64,000 bases of DNA. It comes from Selaginella moellendorffii. Lineage: Eukaryota; Plantae; Lycopodiophyta. The stretch covers positions 96,390 through 160,389 of the forward strand of contig NW_003314392.1 in assembly GCF_000143415.4 (NCBI RefSeq), in the 5' to 3' direction. Of this stretch, positions 22,109 through 64,000 are shown piece by piece. The stretch's first letter is position 1; each line of letters begins with the position of its first letter. A program made the position numbers and the translations under genes. Below the pieces are notes generated by a model, which worked only from the letters and a program-made list of their open reading frames with translations, ran no database searches and was not told where the DNA came from.

Positions 22109-22208
22109 AAAAAGAGGTGGCTCCGGGTGGGTCTCGACCCAGGGACCTATTTGAGTGGACTTGTTTTTAGATTGGGGGTCTCTGCCACTAGGCCTCTACC
22201 ACCTCTCC
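22109..22208 (-). ncRNA. Candidate Pol III small RNA gene, copy 18
   Basis: Same sequence as copy 1. Confidence 0.75.
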
Positions 22209-23427
22209 GTTACATATTTCGTGTCGGTTAAATTTATTGGGTTTGTGGGGGAGGGGGTTTAACTAGCAAAGGGCGATTATGGGGAGCGCTTAGTGCGATT
22301 AAGTGGGGCTTAAGTTGGGGCAATCGCGGCCGTCGGTGCGGTGGGGTGGTTGACCGGCGGCGATGAGTTTGACCGGCGGTCCCCGTGACACGTGGCTAGG
22401 GCTAGGGTCTGGATATGGGTTTTGCGCGAGTGGGCAAGATCCATGGCTCGGTTTGCGGTGGGACTTGAACCGTTGGAAAGCTTGCGTGAGTCCACCCGTT
22501 TCCACAGAAACGGATCTGGATTTCGTCGCTCCACCGGCCCGCACCATTGCGATGGGTTTGACGCTGGGTTTTCGAGCGAGTGGGCAACATCCATGGCTCG
22601 GTTTGCGGTGGGACTTGAACCGTTGGAAAGCTTGCGTGAGTCCACCCGTTTCCACAGAAACGGATCCCGATTTCGTTGCTCCACCGTCCCACACCATTGC
22701 AATGGGTTTTGTGCTGTTCCCGTTGCCATATCTCGTGGACCGTGGGCCCCCTTTCGCCCTTGGGCACATGGGAGCAACTGGGGCGGTGCGCGCAACTGGC
22801 CCATGTGGCCAAGTACATTTTTCCATGTCCTGGGCGCCTGCTTTTGTGGTTTTTCCCACGGAAGAAGATGCGTCCCACGTGGCGATCCGTGTGCCCGCCC
22901 GCACTCCGGCACCAACGGGGCCGGCCGGCGTGACGCCCCGGTCGCGGCCGTGCCAACGGATCGCGGGCCCCATGCGTGGGCTGCCGCCGGGAGTGCATCT
23001 CACTCTCGAGGAAAACACCGCACTGGCGCTCGGGCCTGCACTGGAACGCGACCCCAGGAGCGCCGTGGCGAAGCCCGCGTCGAGGGCATCGATCCGAATT
23101 GGCTGGGCCCCCCATGCCATGCTGGCACCATGCGTGCCTTGTCGAAAACGGCACACCCTTGCGACCGCTGGGCGAAAGGGGCAAACCCCGAGAGGTCCTT
23201 GCAAATGAAAAAAAAAAAAATGATTGGCGTGTTAGGGCGTGGAGGAGCACAGCGTCCAGCACCATGGCTGCCATAATCGGAGGCGCGGCCAGAGGAGGGA
23301 GAGCGCAAAGGGGAGAGCACCCAATCTCCCCGCACTTGCTACCGACGGCGGGGGCATCCGCCGCGAGATTCAGGGAAGAATCACTGCAGAATCTCTCTGT
23401 TTTTTCTTTTACACTGCTGTGCCCAGG

Positions 23428-26400
23428 ATGGAACGTCGTCCAGCACCCAGTAACAGTGGAGGACGAGCCAAGCCTCAGCCGTTCACACTTGGAAGGGGCA
23501 CTCGAGGCCGCGGCCTCAGTATCCGACTGCCCCAGGGAGGGATGCTGAAGGGAAGAGCCGCCAACAGCAAAACCCCAATCGCTGGCAAGAGGACATCGCT
23601 GGGCTCTCCAGGGGACAGTGAGAAGCTAGGTTCAAGTGGCACGGCAGGAAGCAGTGAGCACACAATCAGTGATCAAACAGGCTCGAGGCAGAAATCACAC
23701 CACACGGACAGTGACTACCTTGCAGAGTGCGCAGCCATGGATCTTCATGAAGAAGTAGTGCAGGGTACCAGGGAGATGATGATCAGGGCTCAGCACACTC
23801 ATCAGCTTCTCAAAGAACTGGCAAACACACCAAAGGACACGCTGGAAAAGCTAGTCTCACTGAAACAGGACGGTGGTGCACACAGAAGCAGCGTGGCAAC
23901 GAAGGAGGAGCCACCAGCACCAGATACAGTCCTTGAGCCTGGTTCAGGACGTCTTGGGAACCAACAGGAAGAAGATGAAGCAATGGACGAGGTGATCCTA
24001 CCTGGAAACACAGGGGTGGCGATGCACAAGTCACTAGAAGAGGAGCTGCGCAGGAGCAGTGACGGCGCAGGAGAGCAGAAGCCTTCAAGAGCACAAGGAT
24101 CGGGGCCAGGGACGTCTCAACCAGCCTCACCACCCACGCAGCATGGTTCCCCAGTACAACAAAGCTGTGCGCTGAACAGAGAAGTACAGGAAGTAAGTGG
24201 ATTCCTAGGCTCGGGGGATCTAGCCAGTGGAGATGGACCACGGGAAGAGGTGGCCACAAGCAGAGCTCTAGACTTGAACTTCCTCACCCCCATCACTGAG
24301 TGCATGGGACGTAGAGTGGCTCTCAACGTGGGGAAGACGGCCTATGGAAAAACCAAAGGTAGGACATGCCCTAATCCAAGTAAGAACAGGAGCGGCGTCA
24401 CCACTAGGGCAGCGGCAGCAGCAATGAGGGCAGCCACAGTTGTGGAGATACCAATAGGTTGTCATGCACAAGAGTCAAGAGCGGATCCAGAAGGAGAGAA
24501 GGGCTTGGAGACGCCAAATGACCAAACGAGGGGGCACAAGGAAACGCCAGAGGCACACAGGACAGAGGCAAAGGAGCCAGTCCAGGGGGAAGAGGTGAGC
24601 CGCTGCCTCACCAAGGCCTCAAGTGAAAGCCAGGGCCAGTCCAAGAGAGGGCCACTCAGCCAGAAGTTTTCTCACAGGTGCCTCTCGGATCTGACCAACA
24701 AAGTGAGAACATCTCTACCGGGCTCTCCGGTGAAGTCGGTAGGATCTCGACTTAAGAGCAGGACATCTCCCAGTCATCAGCCTGACCATGAGCCCCAGCT
24801 ATCGGTGCTGCAACAATGTATGCCACACCAGACAGAAGAAGGACTGCTGCAATGGGATCCTCGAACCTTTGCAAAGGCTTTGCGGGAGGCCACTCAGAAC
24901 GAAGTTCAGCTCCACCAAGACATACTCACTGCTGAAGTATGGCACCAGGAGACTCACCCCAAGGGAGAAGACCGAAATCTTGGCCCCGCTCTCAGGGAAG
25001 CCCTCGATCTCGCGACTCAGGCACTAGTCACACCAAAAGAACAAGAGTACACAAACAGCCAGGAGGCCCAACAAGCTAAAGTGCAAGAGGAAGTTACAAG
25101 CACGTGGAAGGAACAAGGGGAACAGGAAGTGGAACATCAAAGAGACCAAGACAAGGAGATCCCGGAAGCCAGCAAAAAGGTGGAGACGCAAAAGGAGGAA
25201 TCGATTCTGGGGAACAGAGCGAAGCCTCTGGCGCTACTGCTGGAAGAACAGGAGGAGGAGATGAAGCGAATGGGACAGGAGAGGGAAAGAGAGGCCAAAA
25301 AGAACAAGACGGAGAAAAAGAAAGAACGCAAGGTGGCGCGTAGGAAGTTAAAGTCCCAAAGTAGTTCAAAGGAGGCCCTCGCATGGGCAAAAGAGGTGGA
25401 GGAGTTCCTCCACGAGGAGGAAACGTGTTCTGAGGAGGACCAGGAGCAGCAGAAGGGTAGCACAGCAAAAGAAAAAGCACAGGGAGCCTTGGCAGGACGT
25501 GGGTGGGAAAAGGTGGAGGACAAGTGTCGGACCACACCACACCAAGGCCCGGAGGACCCAGGGGAGCAAGGGGACTTGAGAGTTGAGCAAGAACAAGAAG
25601 GCTGCCCTGCACAAGGAAAGGTGGTAAAGGAAATCCCGCACACAGAAGCCTCTAAGACGAAGCCTCACGCCGGAGAGTCAGGGAAACGAGCTGGAACAGC
25701 GCTAGGTGCCAAGGGGATGGCAAAGGCAGTCAAGCTGGGCGAGGCTCTCAGCCAGGTGGTGGCGGCTAGGGAAGAAGAACTACGACATAGAGCAGTGATT
25801 GCAGTATTCAGGGGGAAGTTTCCCACTGGCCGCATGGCCATGGACTGGCTGAATGCTACGTTGGAGCAGGGGATCACAATCAAGAACTTGCTCCCACATG
25901 GTCGTGGATGCTACACAGTGGTGTTTGAGACAGAGGAGGCGCGGGCTCGAGCCGAGGAGCTGCATGGACTTATCGATGATAGCTGGGCGGTGTCCTTCCA
26001 CCCGTGGATTACAAGGTTCACGGCAGATGACCAGCCACGGCTGAAGGGGGGAAGTGTCCCACTCAATGTGGCACTGTGGGACATCCCAATGGAGATGAGG
26101 ATTAAAGAGGTGATACGAGAGCTCGTCGAGGGAAGCATCGGGCAGATCGCCTTGGGACTAGACACCGTGGATGCGGAGGGCATTCTGGGCCCTGTGAGAC
26201 TTAAGGTCTTTGTCTCATCCCCAGCAGAACTCCCTATGGAGATAGCAGTCCTGGGACAGTACGTTCGTATACAGGTGGAAAACGCAGCACCACGCTGTGG
26301 TTGGTGCCTACAGTCGGGCCACAGTGAGAATGCGTGCACGACCAAACGACCCAAGCTTGCTCCAGGACGTCCCTTTGAACTCCCAGAGGCCGTGGAGAAG

Positions 26401-26844
26401 CAGCTGAAGCAGCGTCCTCCAGAGCAGGCTCCACACATCAGGTTCCCAAGCGCACCACCTTTCTCGGGACCTGATTCACGGCCCAGAATGTTCGAGAGCC
26501 CGATTGCTGAAAAGGACGGAGAAGGCTTTCAGCAGGTTCTTCCTCGGACTGTGAACATGGCAGTCAGATGGATCCCACCCAGGAGAGAATTAACAACTAC
26601 AGAGGCGGGAGACTGGCTGATGTACCGAGGGCACACGGCCTTCCCAGAGGTCATCACGCTTGGCGATTACCAGACCCGAATGGAACGTGCCATCACTGAG
26701 TGGACGGGATTTTCAGAATACGCAGTGCGGGGCTTCTCTTGGACTAAGTACAGGGGGAGGCTCACTGCAGTATGGACCATCTCCTCGGAATGGAGGGCGA
26801 GGCCTAGCAGCACGGTTTTCTCTTGGAAGTACGTTGCTCCATGA
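23428..26844 (+). CDS. LINE ORF1 (~1138 aa from first shared ATG): long low-complexity/coiled-coil N-terminus, DUF4283/RRM-like region, CCHC zinc knuckle
   Basis: Open frame 23239-26844. The MERRPAP start is shared by both copies. Contains CGWCLQSGHSENAC (CX2CX4HX4C) and a HPW...F...VPLNVALWDIP segment typical of plant L1 ORF1. Confidence 0.88.
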   Translation: MERRPAPSNSGGRAKPQPFTLGRGTRGRGLSIRLPQGGMLKGRAANSKTPIAGKRTSLGSPGDSEKLGSSGTAGSSEHTISDQTGSRQKSHHTDSDYLAECAAMDLHEEVVQGTREMMIRAQHTHQLLKELANTPKDTLEKLVSLKQDGGAHRSSVATKEEPPAPDTVLEPGSGRLGNQQEEDEAMDEVILPGNTGVAMHKSLEEELRRSSDGAGEQKPSRAQGSGPGTSQPASPPTQHGSPVQQSCALNREVQEVSGFLGSGDLASGDGPREEVATSRALDLNFLTPITECMGRRVALNVGKTAYGKTKGRTCPNPSKNRSGVTTRAAAAAMRAATVVEIPIGCHAQESRADPEGEKGLETPNDQTRGHKETPEAHRTEAKEPVQGEEVSRCLTKASSESQGQSKRGPLSQKFSHRCLSDLTNKVRTSLPGSPVKSVGSRLKSRTSPSHQPDHEPQLSVLQQCMPHQTEEGLLQWDPRTFAKALREATQNEVQLHQDILTAEVWHQETHPKGEDRNLGPALREALDLATQALVTPKEQEYTNSQEAQQAKVQEEVTSTWKEQGEQEVEHQRDQDKEIPEASKKVETQKEESILGNRAKPLALLLEEQEEEMKRMGQEREREAKKNKTEKKKERKVARRKLKSQSSSKEALAWAKEVEEFLHEEETCSEEDQEQQKGSTAKEKAQGALAGRGWEKVEDKCRTTPHQGPEDPGEQGDLRVEQEQEGCPAQGKVVKEIPHTEASKTKPHAGESGKRAGTALGAKGMAKAVKLGEALSQVVAAREEELRHRAVIAVFRGKFPTGRMAMDWLNATLEQGITIKNLLPHGRGCYTVVFETEEARARAEELHGLIDDSWAVSFHPWITRFTADDQPRLKGGSVPLNVALWDIPMEMRIKEVIRELVEGSIGQIALGLDTVDAEGILGPVRLKVFVSSPAELPMEIAVLGQYVRIQVENAAPRCGWCLQSGHSENACTTKRPKLAPGRPFELPEAVEKQLKQRPPEQAPHIRFPSAPPFSGPDSRPRMFESPIAEKDGEGFQQVLPRTVNMAVRWIPPRRELTTTEAGDWLMYRGHTAFPEVITLGDYQTRMERAITEWTGFSEYAVRGFSWTKYRGRLTAVWTISSEWRARPSSTVFSWKYVAP

Positions 26845-29800
26845 CCACGCTCACAGTGCTCACGTGGAACTGTCGGGGACTCAGCTCTGAGGACAGTAGA
26901 CTCAACAAGAGAGTACAGCTCAAGTCCCACATCCGGGAGATTGGCTTAGAGGGGAGGATCGACATACTGTGCATCCAAGAGCACAAGATGGTGAAGGCTC
27001 CAGACTTCAATTTGGGCATGCACAGGAGAATTTGGTGGAATCCGGCCACGCAAGTGAGAACACGGTGTGGAGGAGGAACAGCGATCATCGTCTCTACCAA
27101 GTGGTCAGCGCAGGTACGTGACCACAGGGTGCTGGTCCCAGGGAAAGCACAGCTGTTGGTCATACACCTACACTTTGGACGTGTTGGGATTGTCAACGTG
27201 TATGCACCCACTCGAAGAAGGGAGCGCGCACGAATGTGGACAGATATCCAGCAGAGCACTCAAGAGGTGGCGGACGAGTGGCTTGTGGTAGGAGACTTCA
27301 ACATGGTGGAGGGTTTGAGTGACCGGCGAGGTTCACTGGAAACCATACAGGGGAGAGAGAGAAAGAATTGGACAGCGCTAGTCGAAGCCTTGGGAGTCTT
27401 GGACCTCCAGCACGCAGAGGGGTTCGCTGCACACTCTCACCCATTCACGAGACGCCAATCGACAGGGTGCCAAGCTCGACTGGACAGGATTTACGCTTCC
27501 ACCAGGCTGTGACAAGACGGAGGGGGACTCAAAACGTGGCCCGCGTTTGCCACCTTTTCAGACCACGACCCACTCCGAGGCATTCTCAAGCTACAGGCAG
27601 TGAAAGGAGCAGCGGTGCAGAGGAAGATCAGCAAAGCCACAATGGTTGACCCGGTAGCAGTGAAGCTCGTCCAGGAAACACTAGACAGCAGCAAAGGGGA
27701 ACTCGTCTTGGCACTAGGCACTTGCTCCACTAAGCTCCGGGAAAGGCAAGCGGCTCTCAAAGGGGAAGTCCTGAAAGAGGTGAGACTGGCGAGACAAAAG
27801 GTGGCGGCGGCCCAGAGAATGGTCCTACATGCAAACGACAAGGCCAGATGGACAGCAACACTGGATGAGAGGGAAGCAGAGCTGCGGGACAAAGAATATG
27901 CAGCATGGAGTGCTGGACTCCGATCCATGGAGGATAGCTGGGTGATGAATGAACGGCTTCTCAACAAAGCATTCTACAAAGGGATCCGTCCAGTCACCGA
28001 CTCCCCCCCGATCCTAGGACTGAAGAAGGACGATGGAGAAGTGGTCGAGGACCAACAGGGAATGCAGGGGCTGGCCCAGGAGTTTTACCAGAAGCTGTAC
28101 ACGGCCCAGCCCTGGTCCCCGGATAGGAGAGACGCCGCAGGCAGAGTGCTGTCTACTCTCCCACGCAGAGTTCCCGGCGAGTACCTGGAGATGTTGGTGG
28201 CCGACTTTTCATTGGAAGACCTCCATCGGGCCCTGGAGCAGCTGAACGATGACAAGATGCCAGGTATGGACGGCCTCCTTCCAGCATTCTATGAGGAGTA
28301 TTGGGATGACGTTGGCCTGATGCTCCTAGAGACATGGCGAGATGCACAGAAAACAGGGATGCTGCCAGGAGAGATACTAGAGGGACAAATCGCATTGATT
28401 CCGAAACGGGGTGACCTCCAGGAACTCAGGAACTGGCGCCCCATAACCATGCTCAACACGTCGTACAAGATATACGCAAAGGCGATGGCACTCAAGCTGC
28501 AACCAGTCATGCCCCTCATCATCAGAGAACAGCAAACTGGATTTGTGCCGGGACGACAGATCGCAGAAAACATATGGACGTACCTCCTGGCACAGAGGTG
28601 GGCAAACGTCTCAAATCAACAGATTGTAGCATGGCTACTAGACTTTGAGAAGGCCTATGATCGAGTTGATTGGGACTTCTTGGAGGATTGCATGCGGAGG
28701 ATAGGGATCCCGGCAAGGACTGTCTCGCGTATTTCACTTCTCTACAGGGGAGCTACAAGCCGGGTCACACTGAATGGAGAGATAGGCCCGACCTTCCACT
28801 TGGGACGCTCAGTGAGACAGGGATGTCCACTTGCCCCCTACCTGTTCCTGATAGTAGCAGAAACACTGGGCTCTTTCCTCGCGCATGGAGAGGATGTAAA
28901 AGGCCTGGTGCTGCCCTCTGAACGGCTACAACTCCCAGGAACTCAAGTTGTGACACAAGAGCTGGAAGACGGGGCATTTGCAGATGACACCGCACTCTTC
29001 CTACTTGCCACCCCGAGGAATCTGGACGCAGCAAGGTCCAAGCTGGAGATCTTCAACAGGGCAGCGGGGGCAGCCATAAACTGGAACAAGTCAGTAGGCG
29101 TGAACTGGGGAGAGCCAGGCATTGAGACCTGGGGACAGGAGATAGGCTTTCAGTGGCTTCGCCCTGGCGAAGACACTCGGTACCTCGGCATCCAGGTTGG
29201 GACCCGGTACAATGCGGCTACACAGGATGACACGCTTCTCAGGAGGATCCGGACTGCAGTTCAGAAATGGACACCGAGGAAACTCGGACTCCCAGCCCGG
29301 ATTGTAGTGGTCAAGAGTGTGATCCTCCCTAGCATCTGGTACCACCTCTCGATTTGGCCGGTGCTGGAAACTACACTGCAGAAGGTGAGACAGATGGTGC
29401 GGACCTACGTATGGCGTGGAGCATTGGCTACAGGGCGAACCATGGCCAAGGTGGCGTGGCAATCTACAGCGAGGCCGCGCATTCTAGGGGGCCTAGGGAT
29501 CATTGACCCCAGCGACATGGCGAAGGCGATGAGGTACAAGATTTTTCTCATGGGCTTGCAACAGGGGAGACAGCCGTGGCGACTCATGTTTCGGCAGAGC
29601 CTCCTAGCGATACGCCCCAAACACAATGCAGCCAAACCGTGGGAGGAGGACCCACGGTGGCTCTTCGCAGAAGGACCGACGCAGGTAGTGAAGGGGGGCA
29701 ACTTCGTCCAGAGCCTTCATCGACTGTGGAGAGCCTTTCCGCTGGAGCAAACACCACCGACCAGGGCCGAGGAGTGGCTCAACCAGCCTTTGTTTTTCAA

Positions 29801-31366
29801 CGCACTGTTCAAAGAGGGAGGTGTGACACTAGGACGAGAGTCACACCACACGATCTGGAGGAAAATGCACGCAAATGGATTCCGGACAATGAAGCAGCTA
29901 ACGGGAGTGATTGACAGGGATTGGTGGCGAACAGCGAGAAGGACTCAAGTGTTTGGACCTTGGAAGCGACGTAACATCCTGCTGGACATTCTGCGACTCC
30001 TCCGAGTGGTGAACAACACGAAAGCAGGGACAAAGTGGCCGAGAAGATGCCTTCAAGCAGGGGACTTTGTGGCGATCCAGCGGCAAACAGAGTGGGAGGA
30101 ACACGATGCTGTGCGATGTCCGCTAGGGACGTGGACTCGAGCATTCACTGCACCTACACCAGCATGGGAAGAAGGGGACATTGAGGTGTGGTTCGTTGCC
30201 GCACCAGAGCTCAACATAGGACTGCCGTTTCGCATCACGAGAGGAGACACGCTTCTCCCGATGGGTGAGAGACAAGAGATGCCGGACGTCACGGTTTAGG
30301 ACGTCACGGTCATGAGGTACGTGGGAGGATTCGTGTGCTTAGGCACTCACCCAAGAGGCTGGACGTGGTGGACTCGGAAGACCTGCTGGAGGGCGATGGA
30401 TCACTGATATGGTGGCGACAGCAGCTACTAGAAGATCTGGACTGGGACCCTGCTGCATGGCGACGAGGGACAGGAAGCTTTTTCTCCTATGCAGTCAAGG
30501 AAGCGCGGAATGGACTACTGACATCACGAGAGGAGGCGAGAGAGGAGATTCCGAAGCTGTGGCAGAAATGGATAGCACAGGGGGTTGGCGCGGAGCAAGT
30601 GGTGGACAACACGATTCACTTCTGGAAGTTGCCCGTGCAGGAAAAAGTGAAAGTCACCTCGTGGTTGGTAGCAAACAACGGACTTCCGGTTGGACAGCGA
30701 TTCCAGGACGACGCGAGTCGCAGGTGCAGGGAGTGTGACAAAATCGAGACAGTCAAGCATGCACTGTGGGAGTGTGACACTGCAAAGGAAGTGTGGCACC
30801 AGATTATTAAGGCAGGGAAGGAGTTGGGCGTGACACAGGATTTTGAGGCCCGCAGTGGGGATGTGCTTCACTGGTTTGAGGAAGCAAGGGGCCCTGCCCA
30901 GGGCCCAGCCCTACGACACATTAGGTGCAGAGGACGACATGGCTGGGGGAGTCAGGTCCGGTGGGACACGACCGGGGCGGAGGTAGGAGTCCCCGTGTGG
31001 GAGGCGCTTGGACATGCTCGATGGGCGATATGGCGAGCGACGGGAGTCCAGGCCCTTTGGGAAGCACGCAACCGGGCACACTTCGAAGGGACACAGGTCA
31101 GAGTATCACAGGTACTAGCAGAGTGGTGGAGACTTACACTGGCGGCAATACGGCTTCACCATGCTATCCTCCGGGACAGGGGGAAGCTCGAGAGGCTCGA
31201 GGAGTGGCAAAAAGCATGGCTGCCATGTTTTGGTAGAGGAGATCACAAGGAGGTTCGTTGGAGATGGCGCCCCCCGGAGTCGATCTTGCGGTCAGCACGA
31301 AGGGGGGATATGGATCTGGACGTGATACGACGGAGACGACCGCAGCCGCTTCTACTGCAGGCCTAG
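26841..31366 (+). pseudogene. LINE ORF2 (AP endonuclease + reverse transcriptase + C-terminal zinc finger), disrupted
   Basis: Motifs TWNCRGL, CIQE, NVYAP, GDFN, RLDRI, SDH; WRPITMLN, DFEKAYDRV, VRQGCPLAP, FADD; CRECDKIETVKHALWEC. Lesions: CGA->TGA stop at 27510-27512 and a net +14-nt insertion with stop near 30297. Confidence 0.95.
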
Positions 31367-31476
31367 TCTCACTTTAGATGAGGGAGATCACCACTAGGTA
31401 GCATGAGCTTTGGGCAGCATGCCCAGTTTTTGTATTAGTCCCTACGGGACATTGGGGAATGTACATACACGTTTCA

Positions 31477-31510
31477 TCGACCCAGGGACCTACCTAGACC
31501 CAGGGACCTA
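31477..31510 (+). repeat. Target-site copies between LINE-A1 and the non-autonomous element
   Basis: tcgacccagggaccta + ccta + gacccagggaccta. Confidence 0.9.
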
Positions 31511-33188
31511 GAGGAGAGAGCTCGAAGGCGCTAGAGAGAGAGTGTGAGAAAGAGGGAGGGAGTGAGCGTCCAGGGCGGCACAAGCATCGCAGACCGCGGC
31601 AGCAACACACGGAGCTCGGCTCCCTCCTCTTTCTCCCCTTCTCTCTCGCTCTCTGTCGTTTTTATCGATATCTCCCAAACGGCTGGGAGAAACCTCGATT
31701 CCTTCGACGGGGGGCTTCTAGGAGTGTAGATTCTCATCCTCCTAGAAGGCCGCGGCGAGATCTGCCACGGATCTGGAGATCTCGCTGGCCCTAGGTCGCT
31801 GCTGTTTTTAGGGTTCTTCGGCGGCGGCTAGGGTTTTTCGGGGCTCAGAGATTTGGAGGAGTGGAGAGGGCAGTTGGGAACACCACGGCTGCAGCAGCAA
31901 CACGCAGATCTGGACGCTCTCCTCTCCTCCTCTTCTTTTTTCGCTTCTCATGGTTTCAAGTTTTTTGGGAGCTCATAACTCCTGAACGGCTTGGAATTTT
32001 TCCACAAAAATTCACAGGGGGATAGCTGGGAGGGAGCCTCACACCCTCCCAGAAGCGCAGGCAAAAATTCTTCACGGTCTCAGAGCTCTCACCTGCCCTA
32101 ATTCGTGGCTAGGGTTAGGGTTCTTGGCTGGCTTTTGCCCTAACTACGGTTAGGGCAGGACTTAGGGTGGTGGCGGGATCTTTGATCCGGCCACTCTAAG
32201 TGTCAGGGATCTTCGTTGCATGTGGTTGGCACGGCAGCAACATGGTGGAAACGCGACGGTTGTTGGTCTCGCAGCTTCGAGCGGGATTTCTCGCCTTAGG
32301 TCGGGCCATGCAAGGTGGCGACTGAGGTACAGAGAGCGTGAAACTGCATGTGTCGGAGGTTCTTGGCGACTTGAGTCGTGGAAACACGGGGAACTTTGTT
32401 GACTGGTGGAGGACAGTTCGGGACGTCATCCCGACATAGCGAAGTGTCCGCGGTGGATGGACGTGGAAGACACTATGGGCGCATTTTTGGATCTAGTGAC
32501 AGGGAAGTGCTGTCACAAAGGGGGCCAGTGGCGGATGGCCGAGTTGGTTTGCTCGCGGAGGGGATCCCACATGGTTCTTGCTTCAGGGCTAGTCCTTTGA
32601 GGAGGTTCGCGGAGGCTTGCAAGTCTTGTGATTGTCGCGATGCCGGCAACGGGGGCTCGTATATCATTGAAGGGGGCCAGCGCACTTGTCTAGTGTGGGA
32701 GGCAAGGTAGCACGCTCTAGTCTAGAGCTGGAGGAGGCTCACACCTTGCTTGTTCTACGCCTTGGAGTTTGTTCGCAATGGGCACCGACTTAGTGCTGGA
32801 AGTACACTGGGGAGGTAGGCGCTCCAAGACACAGCATCACGTCTTGGGGCGTAACAGGTGGCTTCAGCTTCTGCAGTGGAATCACCTTGGAGGCAAGTGA
32901 CCCATGAGCGATGCCGGGTCATCGTGCTCGAGTTGGACTGCTTGGCTGCGACGACGTCGAGCTAGATCGACATGGTGTTCGTCCGGCTTGACATCATTGT
33001 GACCGAGTGGAGGAGTGGCGAGGCGAAGCAGGTGGCTTCAAGCTCCGCAGTGGAGTCACTTGGGAGGTGGACGGCCCAAGAGCAGCACCGGGCGTTCGCG
33101 CTCATAGTTTCACTAGTTTCTTCGAGAGTGCGCTCTCAATGTTGTTTTGATCCCTAAGGGACTTGGAGAAATGTACATACACGTTGCA
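31511..33188 (+). mobile_element. Non-autonomous, non-coding LINE-dependent element (1678 bp)
   Basis: Flanked by target-site copies (31497-31510 and 33189-33204). No credible ORF. Its last 38 nt are identical to the 3' end of the family-B LINE at 62035-62072. Confidence 0.85.
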
Positions 33189-34453: not shown

Positions 34454-34629
34454 CCGCTACCGACGGCGGATGCCCCCGCTACCGACGGATGCCCCCCGCT
34501 ACCGGCAGATGCCCCCCGCTACCGACGGCGGATGCCCCCGCTACCGACGGCGGGGGCATCCGCCGCGAGATTCAGGGAAGAATCACTCCAGAATTTCTCT
34601 GTTTTTTCTTTTACACTGCTGTGTCCAGG

Positions 34630-42510: not shown

Positions 42511-42620
42511 TCTCACTTTAGATGAGGGAGATCACCACTAGGTAGCATGAGCCTTGGGCAGCATGCCCAATTTTTGTATTAGTCCCTACGGGACATTGGG
42601 GAATGTACATACACGTTTCA

Positions 42621-50185: not shown

Positions 50186-50237
50186 TAGTACATCCATTCC
50201 TAACCTTTTACCATTTCTAACATTGTCCATGTAGGTC

Positions 50238-51382: not shown

Positions 51383-51384
51383 TT

Positions 51385-51395
51385 TGGTATCAGAG
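51385..51395 (+). other. Primer-binding site, tRNA-iMet type
   Basis: TGGTATCAGAG, two nt after the LTR end. Confidence 0.92.
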
Positions 51396-54300: not shown

Positions 54301-56242
54301 TAGCTTTGTGTTATTAACATGTGTACAATTGCTAGTTAGCAACTGTATTGACGTTCAAACAAGCGGAGTGGCAAGTTTGAGTTAGTTGTGTTCTAGACGA
54401 GGTTATTTAGTAAGGGTTGAGCTTTGGCTTTTCCTTGAAAAGTGATTTAGTCATGGACTATGCTAACTCTATAAGTAGAAGAGTTAGTGATCGATATTGG
54501 AATATTTGAATCCTTATAGGATTTTAGTTGAAATATATCAATCATTGATGATTCTTCTTGTGCTTGTTATGAAGTGAGTTACGTCTTGCTATAGATGGAT
54601 TCATGGAGGATCGTTTAGTGATCACTTGTTGAGCATAACTTTGCTATGCTTAGCTTTTGGATTGATGCAGAAATGCTCTTCATTAGCTTTGCATTATAAA
54701 GTTTGGGTTATAGATATGTTGAGGAGGATATTGTGGGTTGCACTATGATTTCTTCTTTAGCATTGAAGTTAGTCTATGCGAGACTCGTGATCATTATTAG
54801 GCAAGACTTAGCTATAAACTTCTTCGAGCTTTTGGTTCTTTGAGTTTTCATGTTCATTGTTCCATTTGTTAGAAGTTGTTGGGGAGGGCATTTTGGCTCT
54901 TTAGCTTCAATGTTCAAGTTGGTTTTTGCATCTAGCAATCATTAGTGATGATTGACTATCATCTGGGATAGTTGTTTGTCCTTATCAAAAGATTTTGCTT
55001 GATTATTGTTGGTATAGAATGATTTGTCGTTCTTTGGGATGGTAGATTATTTCTTTGACGATGGTTTGGCATATCTTTTTGATGGGATAATTGATGATCT
55101 TTTATGGTGGTTAGTTGTTCTTTTTGATAGCTTTTGGCTTTTCGCAATACTGCATGTTCTTTGTGGTTTGCTCTGGATTGGTCTCTTGGGTTTGAGACAT
55201 CAGTAGGATGTTGCTGACACTTGCTTAGGCAACTTGAGTTCCTTGGTGTTGTTGGCTGGGATCTATTCGGATTAGCTAGTGTGATAGTTGGCATTAACGA
55301 GTGTTTGTTGGTCTTGCCACATTCATTCTGTTCTGTTGACTATTGCTCGAGTTAGTTTTGATAGATTGGGATGTTATTTCCTTCGGGTGATACATTCGCG
55401 AGCATTGTGCTTGTCAGTCAATAATATTTTGTGTTCTTTGAGTTATCTCTAGTAAGTTGTTGGTTTACTATCTGCTATCTTCAATAGTTAAGTTTCATCA
55501 TTGAGTTTACTTGATGCTATACTTGCTATTGAATTTTGTTGGATAGTGATTCCTATGCCTACCAATTATGATGATCTTGGTGGTTTTTGTACTATACTAC
55601 TAGTTTATCGGATGATCACTTACTTGGAATACTTTTGTGTTCTAATCTAAGATATACTCACTGATAATTAAGTCTCTAAGATATCATTGTCTATAACTTT
55701 GATATTGTTCATCTATTGATCTTTGAGTTTGGGCCAGTATAGGCAGACTGGCTTCGGCACTTCGTGTGCATGTTGAAATCTCTAGTCATGGGGTAGCTAC
55801 TGTCGACTGGTCACATAACCCGCCTCTCTGTCGATGTTCCTTATTCCGTTAAAAGGGCGTGACCGTGTAAACAACTTTAACTGCCTGTTTACAATAGTCT
55901 ATCTAAACCTTACCGACGGGTTTGGTTTCTTTGCTTAGGAGGGTTGGGGCCTCTGGCTTCTCTCTCTATGTTCCTGCGGGCAGGGGCATATCGCACTTTT
56001 GTAAGCTGGGTGACTCCCAGAGCAGCAAGGGTGGCTGACCCCGTTGGTCATTTCCTTGTCGGCGACGGCCGGAAGGTGTCTAAGCTGGTAGCGCATTTGC
56101 GTTAGACAAAGAGGTTGCCCCCTAACTCATTTAAGTTGGTGCATTTCTCACATAGTGTGAGTACCGTGAACTTTTTCTGGAGTTGTTTCCTTGGCGGTAT
56201 TCTAGACTCGAGTATGCATCGACGAGGACGTCGATCTTCCCT

Positions 56243-56254
56243 AGGGGGGGAGAG
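56243..56254 (+). other. Polypurine tract
   Basis: AGGGGGGGAGAG directly before the 3' LTR. Confidence 0.9.
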
Positions 56255-57399
56255 TGTCGCGCATGTGACTTCGGGTATCGAAAGTTACCTGTCGACTAGT
56301 CCTTACGGACACTCTTACCTTACTGCCACGATGGCAGGAGGTCGGTATTGCTGGACCCGTTATCAGTTTCCCACTTGAGCTAGTTGAGAAACTAGTCAAT
56401 GACCGTGTACTTAGATCGGATAAACATAAGGTAGGAACCCTATGTGTTTCTTGCTGAGCATACTCGGCCTGGTTTGAGAAACTCCTGTCATTGGCTTGCA
56501 CTTGCTAGTATCAAGAACCCCCGCGATATTGAGATTGGTCCCTCAATATCGCTAAATGATAGCTTACCGTGTCTGCCAAACACCCTCGCTTTCATGCCCT
56601 TTGTGTTAGTCTCATTTTGGTCCCAAATGCTATTTATGGAAAGTGTCCAGATTTGCTCATTTGGCATATCTACGGAATGTAGAGATCGGCCTGAACACAA
56701 TGGTGTTCGTCCCGTGTCCAAATTCGCAATCTAAGGACATTCCATATTTAGTAAGTTTCGAGCTTGTCCCAGAGACTAACTCCTGATACTAAGGGAGGCT
56801 TGGGGTGAAAGCCCAAAGCGTGTGTTCCTCAAGGGGGGGGGGCTATGGGGGGTTCCAAATGTATAGTAGGGATAGTGGGTAGGTCGGGCATGGCCGACCA
56901 ACCTGAGGCATAGTCTAGCTCCCGCTTGCGTGCCTGTCCTTGTTCTGCGTCCGGCTTGGGTCTAAGCCCAAGTTCCATTCCATGCTAGTTGGTGGAGTAC
57001 CCATGTCCTCGCGTTAGGCCACCGGTATGCCGAAATAGCGCCAGACTCCGTTTGGCTCCGTTTTGCGTGCTAGTCCTAGCATTGGGATGCTGGTTACTCT
57101 AGGACTGTTCCAAGTCGCTCTGAGCTCCTGTCCCTTCGCTCCTTGGGCTTTATGCTCGGGAGTTGCTCCGTGGTTCGGTTCCGTCACTCCTTGGCTCCAT
57201 GCTTGGGAGTTTGGCACCGTTCCTTTGTTCAGTGGCCCAAGGCCCTGAACCTCGGGTTCCTATGGACACGTGGCATGGACACGTGGCATGTGACACGTGG
57301 CATCTGTCACGTGGCACAAAGAGGGTTTAGGTTCCGCTTCGTGGTGTTATCCTATGGTAAATCACCATAGGATAAAGGGTCAAAACCACGTGCGCTACA
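56255..57399 (+). repeat. 3' LTR
   Basis: 1145 bp; I saw one substitution versus the 5' LTR (c/t at 57121). Confidence 0.96.
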
Positions 57400-58272
57400 A
57401 GGTCGCAAAGCAAATTGTAAGTAGAGATTATTCAGTTGAATTAAGATACAAACTCTAGCCTTTAGTGTCGAGGAAGGATAGTGCCAAGCAAGGGTCGAAA
57501 CGTATGTCCAATCCTTCAGAATCAGCAGTGCGCCCAAGTGATATCGGTCCTAGTTCCTCAATAGCAGTTGATGGTAAATACAGTATAGTCGATTCAATGT
57601 GCTAATGAGTTTATGCTCTATTTCGTTAAAGTGGGATTTATTCAGTAAAATGGGACTAGGTACAAATTTTCAAGTATTTGAAAATGACGTGAAATTATAT
57701 GTTTTTTGTCCAGGGGCTAGACATATCTGGGGCATGGTGACTAGCGCGGTGACTTTATGTCCAGACTGAGTCCATCTGGTTGTATAATAAATCTCATTGT
57801 CAAGGTGAACAAGCCGAATCTGAAGCTAAAGAAGAGCGATGGCATGCGCGCACACACTATTTGTTTGTTCATTGAGCGTGTGGTGAGCTTTCCAAGATGA
57901 ACGTCATTCCTATTAGCCAGACATATAACTTAATGGTGAGAACATTTAGATATTATTCAATGTTATCTTTTTCTAACGAATCTAATTGTGAAGGTGTAGC
58001 AAGAGGCATTGCTAGTCTGGAGAAGTCATTTAACTCATTTGACCCTTAGTGTATTTTCATGAAACTAAATAACATTCATATTATTAAGGAATTTCTCTAG
58101 TACCTTTTTTTTACGACATAGAGGCTTGCATTTCTTTCAAAGGTGATTTAGTAAAAGGCCTGAGGGCACATGCCATTCTATTTCTCAGACCGGTATTAAG
58201 ATATACTAGTGCAAAGGGAAAAAGGTATTTGGTGATCAAGTAAATGACATGAGGGCACACGCCATTATAAGC

Positions 58273-60348
58273 CTAAGCGCTAGTGGACACCTCCTTTTTG
58301 GTACTCTCAGCGGTACTATCATCCTTCTCCGGGTCAGTTGTTTTGCTTTGGATTGTTGTCTCTGACGTTACTCGGGCGTTCTCGATAGTTGTTAATCTTG
58401 CCGTTTGTTCAGAAAAATGATCACCTGGAGTATAGTACGGGGAGTTTGGAAGACTTATATATTCTACATCTTCACCTGCTTCGTTTGGATGAGGCTGTGC
58501 ATTCACCGGGCGACCAGCCTCGTCGGAATGGCATGAGGCCTCACGTGATAACCCTACAATCTGACGGCCAACATATTCACTGGGATGGCATGGGGCCCCA
58601 CGCGATACTACAAGCCTTTGCTCCTCCTCCAGCTGAACCCTGTATGGGGTTCGATCGACAAGGGCCTTATGCAAGGGTTGGCCGTTCAGCTCAATCTGCG
58701 CACTTTGCAGAGACCTTAAGTGTTTTGCTAGGGACGCAATCATCATGTTTGCACCCCCGCCACCCCATAGAGGTACAAAGAAGTTCCCATAGTTCTGGGC
58801 ACCATGCCCATGAGCGATTATGCCAAACAGAGACACAGGCAGCTGCATGGATGAAGAGATTGCCTTGGGGGCAGGATTGAGTCGAGGTAAGCACGTCTTA
58901 TTCTGGTCCATTTTGTCGTGGATGATGCAGAGGTAAGAGTCAGGTCTCTCCATGGAGAGAATCCTGTTATGATAATATGCAGTCCTGCAGCTTCTCTGCT
59001 CGATGTTGTGGTCGAGCCGCCTTCTAACCAACGTCTCTCGCTCTTGAGCGCTGCAAGAATTCTTCGACAAAGCCATTTTGATAGCAGTGCACTCGTCACA
59101 CTTTGAAAAGCTGGAGTACTTTCCTATACTCACATCCCTGAACCTGTTGCTCCACAATCTACTAAATCTAGATTGGCTCAGCTTCCTGTAGCCATTACTC
59201 TGGAGTTCCCGATTCACATCTTCCAATATGGCCCCCTTGGTATACATGGAAGGGAGAACTCGTTGGGTGTCTCGTGTTCCATCTTCCAAGAGGCGGGTTT
59301 TATGTGGTTGCTGCTCGCTACATGTCTCGACAAACCTCTTGAAGATTGCCTCTCCATATACAACATGACCCCTGGTTTTGTGCGTACCGTCGTTCCCATG
59401 GACTGCCTGTTGAACCTTTTGTTCCTCGAACTCAGTTTTGATTCTGTAGAATGTGGTTCGAGGGACTCCATAAATGATTCTCCATGCCTTCATGCAGACC
59501 AAACCCCTCTGGAAGACCATGCCCCCCACCTGATGTTCTGAAGCATCAACAGATGACCGTAATGCCTCATACACAAAATTGCGAGCTGCCTTCCAGGACA
59601 ATGTCTTGTATCTTGCTCTCTCCTCTTCAATAGCATCCCAATCAGCATGTTGACAGCACCTCCTCTTGCAACAAGCAACTGTCGAGACCATTCGAACCTC
59701 CATCGCCATTTTCTGCCTTTTCGGTTCGTTGCTCAGATCCCTTTGGCTGCGCTTTAGGAAGGTGTACTTTCTTTTCCCATGAAGAGATGTTCTGTCATCA
59801 GTTGTAGTGGTGTTTGATTGTGAATCCTTCACATTCTCAAACACTAAGTGCCTCAATTTCCACCGCACAATGCTTCCAATAGTCAGACTGTTTTCTTCTG
59901 TGTCAACAACCTCTAAAATCGCAACTCCAATATCATCCCAGCCCAATTCTTGATTAGCAACCGCATCTCTTGGATCGACAACTGTGGCTAAGCCCTCAGC
60001 TACCACCTCCCCCTCGGGGTTGTTTAGAAACACCTTTGCCTGAATCCATGTAGCACGGTTCTTAAGATCCACGGAGGGAACATGCGTCGCACTTGCGCTG
60101 TCCCCAACATCTGCTTTCTTCTGAAGATTTTTCAAGGCAACAACAACATTTACCCCGACGACCATCTCTCCTCGTTCAATAGCGACCACATTCCCATCGA
60201 AGACAGTCTCTACTGATACAGCAGCATTGCCTTCCCCAAGCCTTTGACAGTGTATAACAAAGTTCCGATCCATAGACACAAGGGTCCCTTTTGCAACTCT
60301 CTTCCCACCATTCAAAATGTAAACCTTTTCCCCAACCCTGAAGGCCAT
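58273..60348 (-). CDS. Transposase-related ORF (691 aa), second copy: intact N-terminal half, lacks the DN..NKN/GHTHEDVD catalytic part
   Basis: Near-identical to copy 1 from TRGHVVYGE to HPNEA, then unrelated low-complexity sequence. Contains CCKRRCC and KCDEC cysteine motifs. Confidence 0.7.
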   Translation of the reverse strand: MAFRVGEKVYILNGGKRVAKGTLVSMDRNFVIHCQRLGEGNAAVSVETVFDGNVVAIERGEMVVGVNVVVALKNLQKKADVGDSASATHVPSVDLKNRATWIQAKVFLNNPEGEVVAEGLATVVDPRDAVANQELGWDDIGVAILEVVDTEENSLTIGSIVRWKLRHLVFENVKDSQSNTTTTDDRTSLHGKRKYTFLKRSQRDLSNEPKRQKMAMEVRMVSTVACCKRRCCQHADWDAIEEERARYKTLSWKAARNFVYEALRSSVDASEHQVGGMVFQRGLVCMKAWRIIYGVPRTTFYRIKTEFEEQKVQQAVHGNDGTHKTRGHVVYGEAIFKRFVETCSEQQPHKTRLLEDGTRDTQRVLPSMYTKGAILEDVNRELQSNGYRKLSQSRFSRLWSNRFRDVSIGKYSSFSKCDECTAIKMALSKNSCSAQERETLVRRRLDHNIEQRSCRTAYYHNRILSMERPDSYLCIIHDKMDQNKTCLPRLNPAPKAISSSMQLPVSLFGIIAHGHGAQNYGNFFVPLWGGGGANMMIASLAKHLRSLQSAQIELNGQPLHKALVDRTPYRVQLEEEQRLVVSRGAPCHPSEYVGRQIVGLSREASCHSDEAGRPVNAQPHPNEAGEDVEYISLPNSPYYTPGDHFSEQTARLTTIENARVTSETTIQSKTTDPEKDDSTAESTKKEVSTSA

Positions 60349-61973
60349 TCTGAAAGTGCAGAAAAGAAGTTAAGACCATACAAAAAATGATTGGAGAATG
60401 GCCTAAATCATAACATACCAAACAACCTCAATAGCATGAGGCCACATGCCATTATTCAAACATGCTATTGACACCCACGTGAAATTTCGCATTCACAAAA
60501 TTGGCATGAGCCCTCATGCCATCTTGATATACACACAACTGCAGGCAAGTAAAAACATACATGACAATACGCTAGCCATGAAATTGCAAGGGCCCAAGAT
60601 GGCATGTGGCCTCATGCCATTTCTAAATGTGGTCCTAAGCCATTCCATGGTGAACATACCAGGAAGCACAAGTGCCGAATATCAAGAGGAAGCGGTAGCC
60701 ACACCAAAGACAGTGCCGCTCGCAACACCGCAACTACTCGTAGCGCCGCTCGCAACACCGCAACTGCTCGTAGCGCCGCTCGCACAAACTGCCACTCGCA
60801 TAAACTGCCGCTCGCAATGGCGCTCGCAATGCCGCAACCGCTCGTAGACGCATAAACCACAGCCCACAACGCCGCTTACACAAGCAGCGCTCACTGCGCT
60901 CAGCGAAACCAAGAACACGGCGCACAAAAATGATAGACCTAGGAATGAGTTCGAGAATTCAAAAATAACACACGCTTGAACGTCACATCAAATCCTCTGA
61001 CAAACTAGATCTTATGATTCCTCTGACAAATTTCAAACTGAGTAGCTTCTAGATTTTGCTGTCGGAGGTTGAACTTTGTCACATCATGTCCTTGCCTCGA
61101 TCCAGCTGTGCCATGTCAGTGATTCGAACTTTGCCATGCCATGTCAGCGATCCGCGCCAAGATTATTCGCCGTGTAAAGGAATAATTATGCTGTGTGTAC
61201 GTCCATTTATGGCAATATAAGGCCACACGCCATTCAAAGAATAATGCTCGACATAAGGCCACACGCCATTCAAAGAATAATGCTAGTCGAGCATTTTTTG
61301 GTGCATTTTTGGGTTCAAAATTGCATGAGCCCACACGCTATAAAGTTTACCTGTACCAAAAATAGAAACAGCTTTATTTACTTGGGAATTTAAGTGGTTG
61401 AGGCATTTTTAAACTTACAAACACATGCCCTACTTACATTCCTTTGGTTGCTTAAAATTCAAAAATATTATAAACCTTTCTTTTTGCATTTTCAATGTTT
61501 TCAATTATGGTTTTTGATTTTCGTAGGACCAGCCTAGTAATCTATTTGCATCCCGTCATGTTTATAGCTAGCTTTCGTTTGTCCCCTTCGCTAGCCTGAG
61601 ATACATCTGCTCGGCATCTGCCTCTTACAGCATTTGCCCAGAAAGGGCATCTTTCTTCACGCAGCATTTGCCACATATTTAGGGTATAGGGTTTAGGGTT
61701 TAGGGTTTAGCAATTCAGTAGCTTGATAAACATGCAAATACAGAACTTGATGCAAAATCCTTTGATATGTCACAATGCCCCTAGGACCATAAACACATTT
61801 CAATAGAGAGGGTCCTTTCATTTCATAACTCCTTACGTAGATCTTGGTGAAACCAGAGTTAGTGAAGTTAGTTTCTTGTGATCCCGCATCTGATTGTGAT
61901 GTCCCTTTGCAGTTTCGATGGAAAGGTCAATGCACACCAAACTATAAAATCTTGGAGCAAAATAACGGTCAGT

Positions 61974-62034
61974 GGCCTAGTGGCAGAGACCCCCAATCTA
62001 AAAACAAGTCCACTCAAATAGGTCCCTGGGTCGA
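61974..62034 (+). pseudogene. Inverted remnant of the array RNA gene (box A to mid box B)
   Basis: ggcctagtggcagagacccccaatctaaaaacaagtccactcaaataggtccctgggtcga is the exact reverse complement of the unit segment. Confidence 0.93.
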
Positions 62035-64000
62035 TGCAACGTGTATGTACATTTCTCCAAGTCCCTTAGGGACTGATACAAAAAACAAGAATCCCTTAGC
62101 GTTGTTCACTCAACTACGCTGTCCTGCAATTCTCCACCTAATAGTGATCGCTGCCCTCCAATCGTGGCTGCTGTGGTCGTCGCCTCCGCAGTGCATCCAG
62201 TGCCAGATCGCCACGTCGAGCCTCCTTTGTTACCGTGTCCGAAGGTCTCCATTTCCACTTGACCTCCCCCTTGTGTTCAGTTCCGTAGCACGGAGTCCAT
62301 AGTCGTCGCCAAGCTGTGAGTGCCTCCTTGTCTTTCCCATGCTCCTGGAGCATCGTATCCCTCAAGCGGATAGCAGCCAGTGTGAGCCTCCACCAATTCG
62401 CCATGATCGCTGAAATCCGAGCGCACTGTCCTTCGAAGTGGTTGCGGTTCCGAGCCTCCCAGAGTGCCTGTACCCCGGAAGCCCGCCATACCTCCCATCT
62501 CGCCCGTCCAAGGGCCTCCCACACTGTAGTCCCAACTTCGGCGCCTACCGCGTCCCACCTAACTCGGGTGCCCCATCCTGAGCGTCCCCAACACCCGATC
62601 TTCCGCCAAGCTGCTCCTGTGCATGGTCCCCTTGCCTCTGGAAACCATTGGGTGACATCCCCTTCTCGAATTTCGAAATCCTGTTTGTCCCCTAGTTCCC
62701 TCGTCGCTTTTGCTACCTACCGCCACGTCTCCTTGGCCACGTCACAATCCCAGAGGAGGTGTGTGACCGTCTCCAGTTCCCCGCATTCCGGACACCCGTG
62801 AGCATTCTCCACTTGAAATTGCTGGCCTACTGGCAGCCCATTCATCGCCACGAGCCAAGAGGTTACCTTTGATTTTTCCTGGATCAGTAGTTTCCAGAAC
62901 GCCACGGTATTGTCAATCACCTGGTCCGCCTCCACTCCTAGTGCGATCCACTTTTGCCACAGTCATGGGATTTCTTCTCTCTCAAATTCCCTGTTCACCA
63001 TCAAACCGTTCCGCGCATCCTTGACCTCGTAAGTGAAGAAGCTGTTCGCCCCGCGTCTCCATGCTGCTGGGTCCCAGTCCAGATCTTCTATTAACTCTTT
63101 CCTCCACCATACTAGCCGTCCCTCTCCTTCTAGCCAGCATGGTGACTCTACCACTTCTGTCCGAGTTGCTGTCTGTCTTAGAACCCGGATTTGTCCTTTC
63201 ACTTCATCATCCGTGACCTGCGGCATCTGTTGGGGATTCCCCGCCTCGAGGAGTGTGTCGCCTCTCACTACACGAAAAGGCCTACCGAGGTTTTAGTCTG
63301 GGTCTGTCACAAACCACACCTCAATCTCCCCCTCATTCCACGCTGGGGTTGGCATCGTGAATGCCCGAGTCCATTTCCCAAGTGGTACCTGCTCGCCATC
63401 CGACGTCTCCTCCCTTTGAATTGCCACAAAGTCCCCAGTGTGTAGCCTTCTTGCTGGCCATTTATCCACTGTCCATGCTTTTGTCACTGCCCGCAGTAGC
63501 TTCAGTAGATCCCACTGCACGTCCCGCCATTTCCCTGGCCCAAAAACTTGGAAGCGCCGGGACGATTTCTGTGGATCCGGATCTACCACTCCAACTAGTT
63601 GTTTGACTGTCCTGAAGCCTCCTTGGTGTACCCGCCTCCATATGGTGTAGTGATTCTCTCGGCCTAGTGTCCTGTCTCCTGCCTTGAACAACTCGTTGAA
63701 AAACAGCGGCTGATTCAGCCAGTCCTCTACCCTATTCTGGATGACCTGCGTCACTGGAAATGACTTCCAGAGCCGATGGAGACCCTGGACCAACTGGCCT
63801 CCCCCTACCACCTGTGTTTGGCCCTCCGCGAACATCCAGCGGGGGTCCTCATCCCACACTCTTGCGAATCCATGCTTCGGCCTGATGGCTAGCATGCTCT
63901 GCCTGAACAAGAGCTTCCAAGCTTGGGCCCCCGGTTGAAGGCCCATTAGTATGACTTTGTACCTCAGCGCCTTGCTCATGTCGCTTGGGTCAATTATCCC
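62035..64000 (-). mobile_element. 3' part of a diverged sister LINE (family B); ORF2 C-terminus with stops/frameshifts
   Basis: Fragments WLNQPLFFN, LIEDLDWDPAAWRRG, CPECGELETVTHLLWDC and VQALWEARNR are homologous to family A. The 3' end ...acacgttgca joins the same target. Confidence 0.93.

Follow-up and report, generated by a model that had tools for sequence, protein, structure and literature searches.

Two LINE families of Selaginella moellendorffii joined to one nucleotide of a tRNA-like gene in a 1249-bp satellite: probable sequence-specific integration by a plant-lineage L1 element

A 64,000-nt stretch of the Selaginella moellendorffii genome (RefSeq assembly GCF_000143415.4, contig NW_003314392.1, positions 96,390 to 160,389 of the forward strand; called the window here) carries long interspersed nuclear elements (LINEs) of two families, A and B, as well as a non-coding element, X, all joined by their 3′ ends to the same nucleotide of a short sequence repeated in a 1249-bp satellite. 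The best explanation is that A and B integrate sequence-specifically at one site of a tRNA-like, RNA polymerase III (pol III)-type gene present in the satellite unit. With a probability of about 0.75, A and B are sister families of L1-clade LINEs of the streptophyte lineage, whose apurinic/apyrimidinic-type endonuclease (APE) nicks GGGTCGA^GACCC and which integrate through target-primed reverse transcription (TPRT) from a stringently recognised 3′ tail. The core of this, that an L1-type LINE of the plant lineage is site-specific for a new target, was proposed earlier from the letters of the window (the sequence-only reading) and is supported by the junctions and by the placement of the reverse transcriptase (RT). 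Evidence beyond the window consists of contigs of public read runs and of locus L001.

The tandem array of the 1249-bp unit occupies positions 1–23203 and holds 18 target motifs, its last unit being cut at unit position 1069 by element A1. The target is a 16-mer, TCGACCCAGGGACCTA, with 24 matches in the window versus 0.05 expected. It recurs each 1249 bp across 1–23203 and is found again at 31477, 33189, 34438 and 42621 and, on the minus strand, at 62019–62034. Nineteen target sites in the window are left undisrupted. In one example of an empty target, at 2228–2243 (plus strand), the 16 bp shown are those duplicated upon insertion, and the first nick would fall on the minus strand at GGGTCGA^GACCC, the left edge of the 16-mer.

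When the final 31 nt of the tail are written as a degenerate pattern, exactly four sites in the window match, at 31446–31476, 33158–33188, 42590–42620 and, on the minus strand, 62035–62065, and each of these directly abuts TCGACCCAGGGACCTA. The four 3′ junctions (31476/31477, 33188/33189, 42620/42621 and, minus, 62035/62034) fall on the same nucleotide in the same orientation, and all four elements are antisense to the gene defined by box A, box B and a T5 run. A rough estimate of the chance that three further insertions would each fall on one of ~23 homologous strand-positions of 128,000 is ~6e-12. The sequence-only reading had described these four junctions at one nucleotide, the constant antisense orientation, a perfect target site duplication (TSD) of one copy and the use of one site by two diverged families; all of these hold, the B tail being joined to the same nucleotide as the A tails.

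The TSD belongs to LINE A2 (34454–42620, plus strand, 8167 bp). Identical 16-mers are found at 34438–34453 and 42621–42636, with normal unit sequence beyond both, and therefore A2 has a genuine 16-bp TSD. The 5′ copy forms the final 16 bp of a complete unit (33189–34453) situated between X and A2, and the 3′ tail of A2 is joined to the 3′ copy, with which unit positions 1–846 begin (42621–43466) before the array ends and adjoins another repeat family. The 5′ end of A2 consists of 4.7 copies of a 22-nt repeat. LINE A1 (23204–31476, plus strand, 8273 bp) is likewise joined to the target by its 3′ tail and shows a family-typical 5′ region, which is the common form in reads (loose end at 34540 in 9+1 read contigs). 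A1 is without a TSD: at its 5′ end it meets the unit at position 1069, and 179 bp of the unit together with the 5′ target copy are gone.

Element X (31511–33188, plus strand) is 1.7 kb long, has no open reading frame (ORF) above 110 aa and is joined to the target at 33189. Its last 38 nt are the B tail, and its likeness to B is confined to these. The segment between A1 and X (31477–31510, plus strand) consists of the 16-mer at 31477–31492, a CC, and an imperfect 16-mer with one mismatch, TAGACCCAGGGACCTA, at 31495–31510. In the simplest account, X would have inserted first and A1 later into the 5′ TSD copy of X; the near-copy TAGACCCAGGGACCTA would then belong to the 5′ end of X or to a ragged 5′ junction. 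In a poly(A) RNA-seq run (X26), paired reads 90–95% alike to X cover region 31536–33000 with many loose ends, the first mate always being on the minus strand, and a copy 98% alike is present in contigs of a DNA-like run. Thus X belongs to a multi-copy family with transcribed relatives.

LINE B (62035–64000, minus strand) is represented by its 3′ part only. The sequence-only reading had B extend over 43467–62072, which is not the case: B starts at 62035 and runs upward on the minus strand until it leaves the window at 64000, so that an end at 62072 spans the B tail only. B is collinear with A2 positions 6215–8167, with 72–80% nucleotide identity. It has three in-frame stops (63293–63295, 62963–62965 and 62717–62719) and no frameshift over ~1.1 kb. 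The stops at 62717–62719 and 62963–62965 lie opposite AAG (Lys) codons of A2; that at 63293–63295 is outside this alignment. The target beside B is part of an inverted 68-bp unit fragment (61967–62034, minus strand; target plus 52 nt) containing the RNA gene without its first ~15 nt; a copy of another repeat, truncated, is fused to this fragment.

Between A1 and A2 there are 165 differing positions (2%; 97.7% identical), ~10x the divergence of the surrounding units. They have unlike 5′ ends, unlike 5′ junctions (a deletion versus a perfect TSD) and unlike 3′ neighbours, and each carries its own 14-nt indel, which breaks the frame at a different place. The body of X is unrelated, and B is a different family. 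Thus A1, A2 and X represent independent in-array events. The B junction records a B-family element at the target, yet is weaker evidence than the three in-array events.

The target is situated in a segment of 100 nt, one per unit and on its minus strand, which resembles a pol III-type gene (one example, at 2203–2302 on the minus strand, consists of 95 nt plus T5). Within the segment, TAGAGGCCTAGTGG resembles box A and GGGTCGAGACC resembles box B, judged against the pol III box consensus sequences, and there are also a terminal stem of 8–11 bp and a T5 run. The target site lies within the box B-like motif and is flanked by the inverted arms GGGTC/GACCC. Rfam gave no match to the RNA gene, either at gathering thresholds on the window or with E-values up to 10 on one unit, ARAGORN run on the window called no tRNA gene for the target segment, neither tool identified the RNA gene at related loci, and the fold of the RNA gene is not better than that of shuffled sequences (z = −1.2). 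Identity as a tRNA is not supported, with no covariance-model match and no cloverleaf (Rfam, ARAGORN). Identity as a vault RNA, suggested by a resemblance of box B, is not supported either, with no Rfam Vault match. Run X26 (poly(A) RNA-seq, 1.4 Gb read) has zero reads on the unit. The single run marked "RNA?" (X17) covers the entire unit as a tandem, including the spacer and the tandem joint, as DNA would. Conservation of gene and spacer is not comparable, because the array is very homogeneous, with 5 variable columns among 14 exact-length units.

Public read runs extend the picture of the array. Two independent runs, X8 and X17, give an array contig that is circularly permuted, with its breaks precisely at 33189 and 34437+16. 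Contig breaks at both edges of the 16-mer are expected if the sequenced genome has branches there. In X8, the A and B/X tails have a depth of ~6 versus ~70–71 for the unit, matching the window ratio of 2:23. Run X1 is bisulfite-like, with transitions dominating, and was useless.

The 45-nt 3′ tail (42576–42620, plus strand, in A2) consists of a hairpin, GTCCCTAYGGGAC, followed by a segment ending in AATGTACATACACGTTKCA, with no poly(A). The same tail is found at 31432–31476, 33144–33188 and, on the minus strand, 62035–62079. Between A and B, 41 of the last 45 nt are identical, and the 3′ untranslated region (UTR) directly upstream is unalignable. Folding of the hairpin is not energetically exceptional when compared with shuffles, so the case for tail function rests on conservation and not on energy. 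Tail conservation, together with a non-autonomous element that carries just that tail, fits the 'stringent' type of 3′-end recognition (PMC3472496); the feature of stringent LINE/SINE-type pairing that is present here is that X has its last 38 nt in common with B. A metagenome scan for the tail gave 8 chance matches, the hairpin being in none. The tail hairpin GTCCCTACGGGAC (31438–31450) and the T arm-like target on the opposite strand (2228–2243) have GTCCCT and GGGAC/GGGTC in common, and, given read-through, pairing of the tail with the 16-mer is possible at −20 kcal/mol, a value that is not significant. This likeness of tail and target may be coincidence or may be part of tail-target recognition.

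Over 371 codons of the C-terminal region, B and A2 have 63% amino acid identity, with a proportion of nonsynonymous differences (pN) of 0.25 and of synonymous differences (pS) of 0.79, which is saturated, and pN/pS ~0.3. The low pN with saturated pS shows that A and B split long ago and evolved under purifying selection, as active elements; with the nearly identical tails, it speaks for a specificity long kept under selection. From the specificity of two families, the sequence-only reading had suggested that the target is old and hence functional. The first part is in keeping with the old split, which implies that the target sequence has long been present in many copies. The second part is not supported: function of the target RNA does not follow from the split, and the segment has no Rfam or ARAGORN match, zero poly(A) reads and, in the "RNA?" run, DNA-like coverage. 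The finding draws attention to the target, an unannotated pol III-type gene, or the relic of one, within a satellite.

In A2, ORF1 (34630–38016, plus strand, from the first ATG) is open and encodes ~1130 aa, with a long low-complexity N-terminal part, a DUF4283-like region and one CCHC knuckle (CX2CX4HX4C). ORF2 (37995–41342, plus strand) is open across the APE and RT domains, and a 14-nt deletion near 41195 shifts the frame before the zf-RVT domain, which is found in a C-terminal ORF in the other frame (41227–42510, plus strand). The ORF2 of A1 is interrupted within the APE region and again by an additional 14-nt segment that contains a stop. Pfam matches of the A2 ORF2 are Exo_endo_phos (1.2e-17) and RVT_1 (2e-25); zf-RVT (PF13966) is matched with 4e-9 in A1 and A2 and with 2e-9 in B.

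In a phmmer search of solved structures with the A2 ORF2, human L1 ORF2p is best by far (E-value = 3e-47), with residues 7–865 aligned to 4–849; over residues 4–850 of the human protein the two are collinear. R2 proteins are far weaker, at 1e-14 or worse. The alignment to human L1 ORF2p shows the motifs WNcrG, QEh, vYAP, GDFN, DRIy and SDH of the APE and FADD of the RT. The APE region alone gave no phmmer match in the PDB. A plant-type ORF1 with DUF4283 and CCHC, as claimed in the sequence-only reading, is weakly supported. The CCHC knuckle is present and the nearest ESM-atlas clusters are streptophyte DUF4283/zf-CCHC proteins, although with a score of 0.89 this is a mere lead; the DUF4283 match itself is below threshold (E-value = 0.17, 12 bits versus a cutoff of 27). 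DUF4283 plus a CCHC knuckle is a feature of plant L1 ORF1 (Ivancevic 2016, PMC5203782).

Among 1.84 billion representatives, searched exhaustively, there is a single close relative, P0027 (XP_024517766.1), also from S. moellendorffii and 92% identical, with all other relatives at or below ~40%. Of the best 150 of these representatives, 30 were looked up; 24 have a source name, and 22 of the 24 are streptophytes (21 without P0027). The two other named rows are a turtle multi-RT model and a pseudoscorpion protein. RT trees, unrooted, were made with FastTree and IQ-TREE (quick). In the RT tree, A2 groups with an ENA metagenome protein and with the fern Adiantum (SH-like approximate likelihood ratio test, SH-aLRT, 94), sister to a Chara braunii clade (91) and within a clade with a value of 97* that includes the liverwort Riccia. 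The other half of the tree from A2 contains the pseudoscorpion row and also the closest relatives of the turtle protein, through which that protein, absent from the tree, is placed. The family is thus nested among streptophyte LINEs, and this nesting favours a plant L1-lineage, the family probably being an L1-clade element of the streptophyte lineage. Every neighbour with a name is a plant or a charophyte, and the 'Tx1-type' label given in the sequence-only reading finds no support, in a comparison without labelled Tx1 references.

A word-indexed search with ORF2, using words from the first 500 residues, gave only matches of ~25% identity, and a protein search with the C-terminal ORF gave P0027 alone. 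A search with P0027 gave no more S. moellendorffii copies, the relatives being metagenomic, fern and Chara proteins at 36–43%. ENA/JGI metagenome contigs (e.g. L006–L013) contain a large set of uncharacterised LINE proteins, P0198–P0262, some of them in clusters of up to 99 members; at 36–43% identity they are closer to the Selaginella family than any annotated seed-plant L1. No RNA gene was found near the relatives at their loci (Chara L004, ENA L002/L003, Logan L005, JGI L006–L013), and L002–L013, being single loci or one locus in several samples, are uninformative on target specificity.

The invariant orientation, the one junction nucleotide and the 16-bp TSD, combined with the established biology of TPRT, lead to the following mechanism. 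The APE of ORF2 would nick the sense strand of the gene at GGGTCGA^GACCC, inside the box B/T loop-like motif. The freed 3′ OH would prime reverse transcription on the terminal CA of the tail (end ...ACACGTTKCA, no poly(A)), and the RT would recognise the conserved 45-nt tail stringently; the non-coding X, with a 38-nt B-type tail alone, could therefore be mobilised in trans. A second nick on the other strand, 16 bp off, would produce the TSD. Joining at the 5′ end would be imprecise, as the deletion of A1, the 22-nt repeats of A2 and the extra CC and near-copy of the target in X suggest. Donors would reside in the target, with transcripts probably reading a few to tens of nt into it, and the read-through target sequence could help annealing at the nick. 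Such read-through would explain junctions outside the intact array that keep some of the target after the tail. The enzyme looks competent in design, since domains and catalytic motifs are present and ORF1 and the APE-RT region of A2 are open.

Several observations weigh against sequence-specific integration by A and B. In run X8, an A tail is followed by TCGACCC and then by unrelated sequence over 255 nt. A B-type tail in the same run is followed by TCGA and then by a sequence that recurs in another repeat of L001; some copies thus lie outside any intact target. L001 contains the one further genomic A copy examined, which lies amid other transposable elements (TEs) with no array nearby and whose 3′ end is replaced by other repeats. 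The B flank is 68 bp of unit fused to a foreign repeat; paralogues of this repeat at 47348 and in L001 show that the copy is truncated. No A copy with an uninterrupted ORF2 is seen, B has three stops, and thus no active master is seen. The specificity of the APE is what we infer from the junctions. The data are one 64-kb window and contigs of public runs, and the specificity seen is that of these. The three junctions outside the intact array keep 4, 7 and 68 nt of the target after the tail. They can be read as variable read-through (3′ transduction) from target-resident donors followed by insertion off target; equally possible is a later rearrangement of true target insertions.

Those retained nucleotides also bear on the alternative that survives best, though it is unlikely, in which the specificity would lie mainly in the RNA: a read-through UCGACCC... 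would anneal to a nicked or breathing palindromic T arm-like site, and the APE would be loosely specific. Downstream target sequence in the template RNA plays a comparable role in some site-specific insect LINEs. The 4, 7 and 68 nt are what read-through templates would leave, and the inverted arms GGGTC/GACCC do flank the site. However, a stagger of exactly 16 bp and four junctions precise to a single nucleotide are what a sequence-specific nick typically leaves, no extra template is required for the in-array junctions, and the retained nucleotides could stem from the rearrangements just mentioned.

A hotspot made by the host is distinctly less probable. Here pol III or TFIIIC on box B, or the palindrome, would expose or break the DNA, and LINEs of the lineage, or endonuclease-independent insertions, would land there. 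The gene does have pol III promoter elements, with the site inside its box B-like motif, and targeting of tRNA genes by tethering to protein is known for the Dictyostelium element TRE5-A (PMC3706591). However, tethered elements insert near their targets at a distance and not at a specific internal position (PMC3706591), whereas here orientation and nucleotide are invariant. In addition, only elements with this one tail are found at the site, other TEs that hit the array sit elsewhere (unit positions 846 and 67), and the read runs give no sign of transcription of the gene.

Slightly less probable again is an effect of ascertainment, the family being dispersed or weakly biased and the array a sink in which copies persist together. 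Other flanks are indeed present in reads, and around the L001 copy there are other TEs and no array. Persistence, however, cannot yield the same nucleotide and orientation four times or a TSD of target sequence. The alternative flanks still start with target nucleotides, and the X8 tail-to-unit depth of ~6:70 is the one expected if most tails accompany units. Multiplication of one ancestral insertion by unequal crossing-over or segmental duplication, which the sequence-only reading had judged unlikely, would suit a highly homogenised array and the near-identity of A1 and A2, but has next to no probability left, being contradicted and, for the in-array copies, excluded by the different ends, junctions and neighbours of A1 and A2, their excess divergence over the units and the wholly different sequences of X and B.

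Sequence-specific LINEs have so far been described mainly in animals. According to Kojima and Jurka 2015 (PMC4640811), most of the target-specific TE families on record are early-branched elements encoding a restriction-like endonuclease (RLE) or belong to Tx1 and R1, clades whose members encode an APE. Within the Tx1 clade, Mutsu is found in 5S, Keno in U2 and Dewa in the tRNA-Leu spacer (PMC3706591; Kojima and Fujiwara 2004 cited in PMC3706591, PMC4640811), and Keno has not been found outside animals (PMC4640811). No sequence-specific LINE of plants is mentioned in a 2025 review on the localisation of plant TEs (PMC12477314). A search of the literature on Tx1 or target-specific LINEs in Selaginella found nothing relevant, an existing Repbase entry remaining possible.

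The Selaginella family is like the Tx1-clade elements Keno, Mutsu, Dewa and Tx1L in being of the APE type and L1-related, in its use of one nucleotide in a small-RNA gene unit that is repeated in tandem, in precise 3′ and ragged 5′ junctions and in the presence of several families at one target. In contrast to them, the named relatives of its RT nested beside it are all streptophytes (fern, Chara, liverwort) and not animals, in a comparison without a Tx1 reference sequence; a C-terminal zf-RVT and a putatively DUF4283-like/CCHC ORF1 recall plant L1, and its target, a tRNA-like gene in a 1249-bp satellite, is unannotated. With the R1 clade (R1, TRAS, SART) it would have a sequence-specific APE in common. 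LINEs of the R1 clade depend on their 3′ UTR and use read-through or flank sequence to initiate precisely. The Selaginella ORF2, unlike that of the R1 clade, is collinear with L1 ORF2p and has FADD, which places it in a different clade, and the element has neither poly(A) nor a telomeric target and resides in a plant host.

The stringent L1 elements of plants and green algae (LINE1-1_ZM with its SINE partners, and L1-1_CR; Ohshima 2012, PMC3472496) are similar in being of the plant L1 clade and in having a conserved 3′ stem-loop tail in common with a non-autonomous partner, which here is X. They are not reported to be target-specific and mostly end in poly(A) repeats, whereas the Selaginella element has no A-tail and an invariant insertion nucleotide. 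Dada DNA transposons of tRNA and small nuclear RNA genes (PMC3706591) also use conserved sites, including pol III promoter boxes, in multicopy small-RNA genes, but are DDE transposons with TSDs of 6–7 bp, whereas the Selaginella elements are retroelements. R2 and Utopia (PMC4640811) likewise stay faithful over the long term to a single site in a multicopy RNA gene and show variable 5′ junctions, but have a restriction-like endonuclease and a single ORF in place of an N-terminal APE and two ORFs.

If A and B are indeed site-specific, a plant L1-lineage family has kept one insertion nucleotide across a split that saturates synonymous sites, target recognition by APE would have evolved convergently, and the family would offer a natural LINE and non-autonomous pair for the study of stringent 3′-end recognition in plants, as well as a compact APE/RT with a defined target sequence of 16–22 bp. 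A wider proposal is tentative, and we lean slightly against it: land plants might hold an anciently site-specific LINE lineage within the streptophyte L1 radiation, independent of Tx1 and R1, with a poly(A)-less, stringently recognised tail and an APE reading a box B/T arm-like sequence, which in Selaginella may have radiated onto several multicopy RNA-gene targets.

Other features of the window concern the array and its neighbours. One unit, at 21035–22133, is 1099 bp rather than 1249 bp, being without one copy of an internal 150-bp duplication/sub-repeat. At 6028–6127 an assembly gap of 100 N stands in place of 28 bp of one unit, and thus the real array length and the number of insertions may exceed those of the assembly. 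The repeat family that adjoins the array is found in two copies, at 43467–47348 and 58476–61972. The first meets the array at unit position 846, and the second ends, truncated, at the 68-bp unit fragment beside B. One copy contains a 550-aa ORF with DUF7869 (43936–45591, minus strand) and one a 691-aa ORF (58273–60348, minus strand), and pieces of the family are present at 97% identity in L001. A probable young long terminal repeat (LTR) retrotransposon is found at 50238–57399, with 1145-bp direct repeats (50238–51382 and 56255–57399) that are 99.9% identical; a 90%-identical relative lies in L001 at 2935–8553. Within the repeat that adjoins B, an interstitial TTTAGGG run of 4.7 copies is found at 61678–61710.

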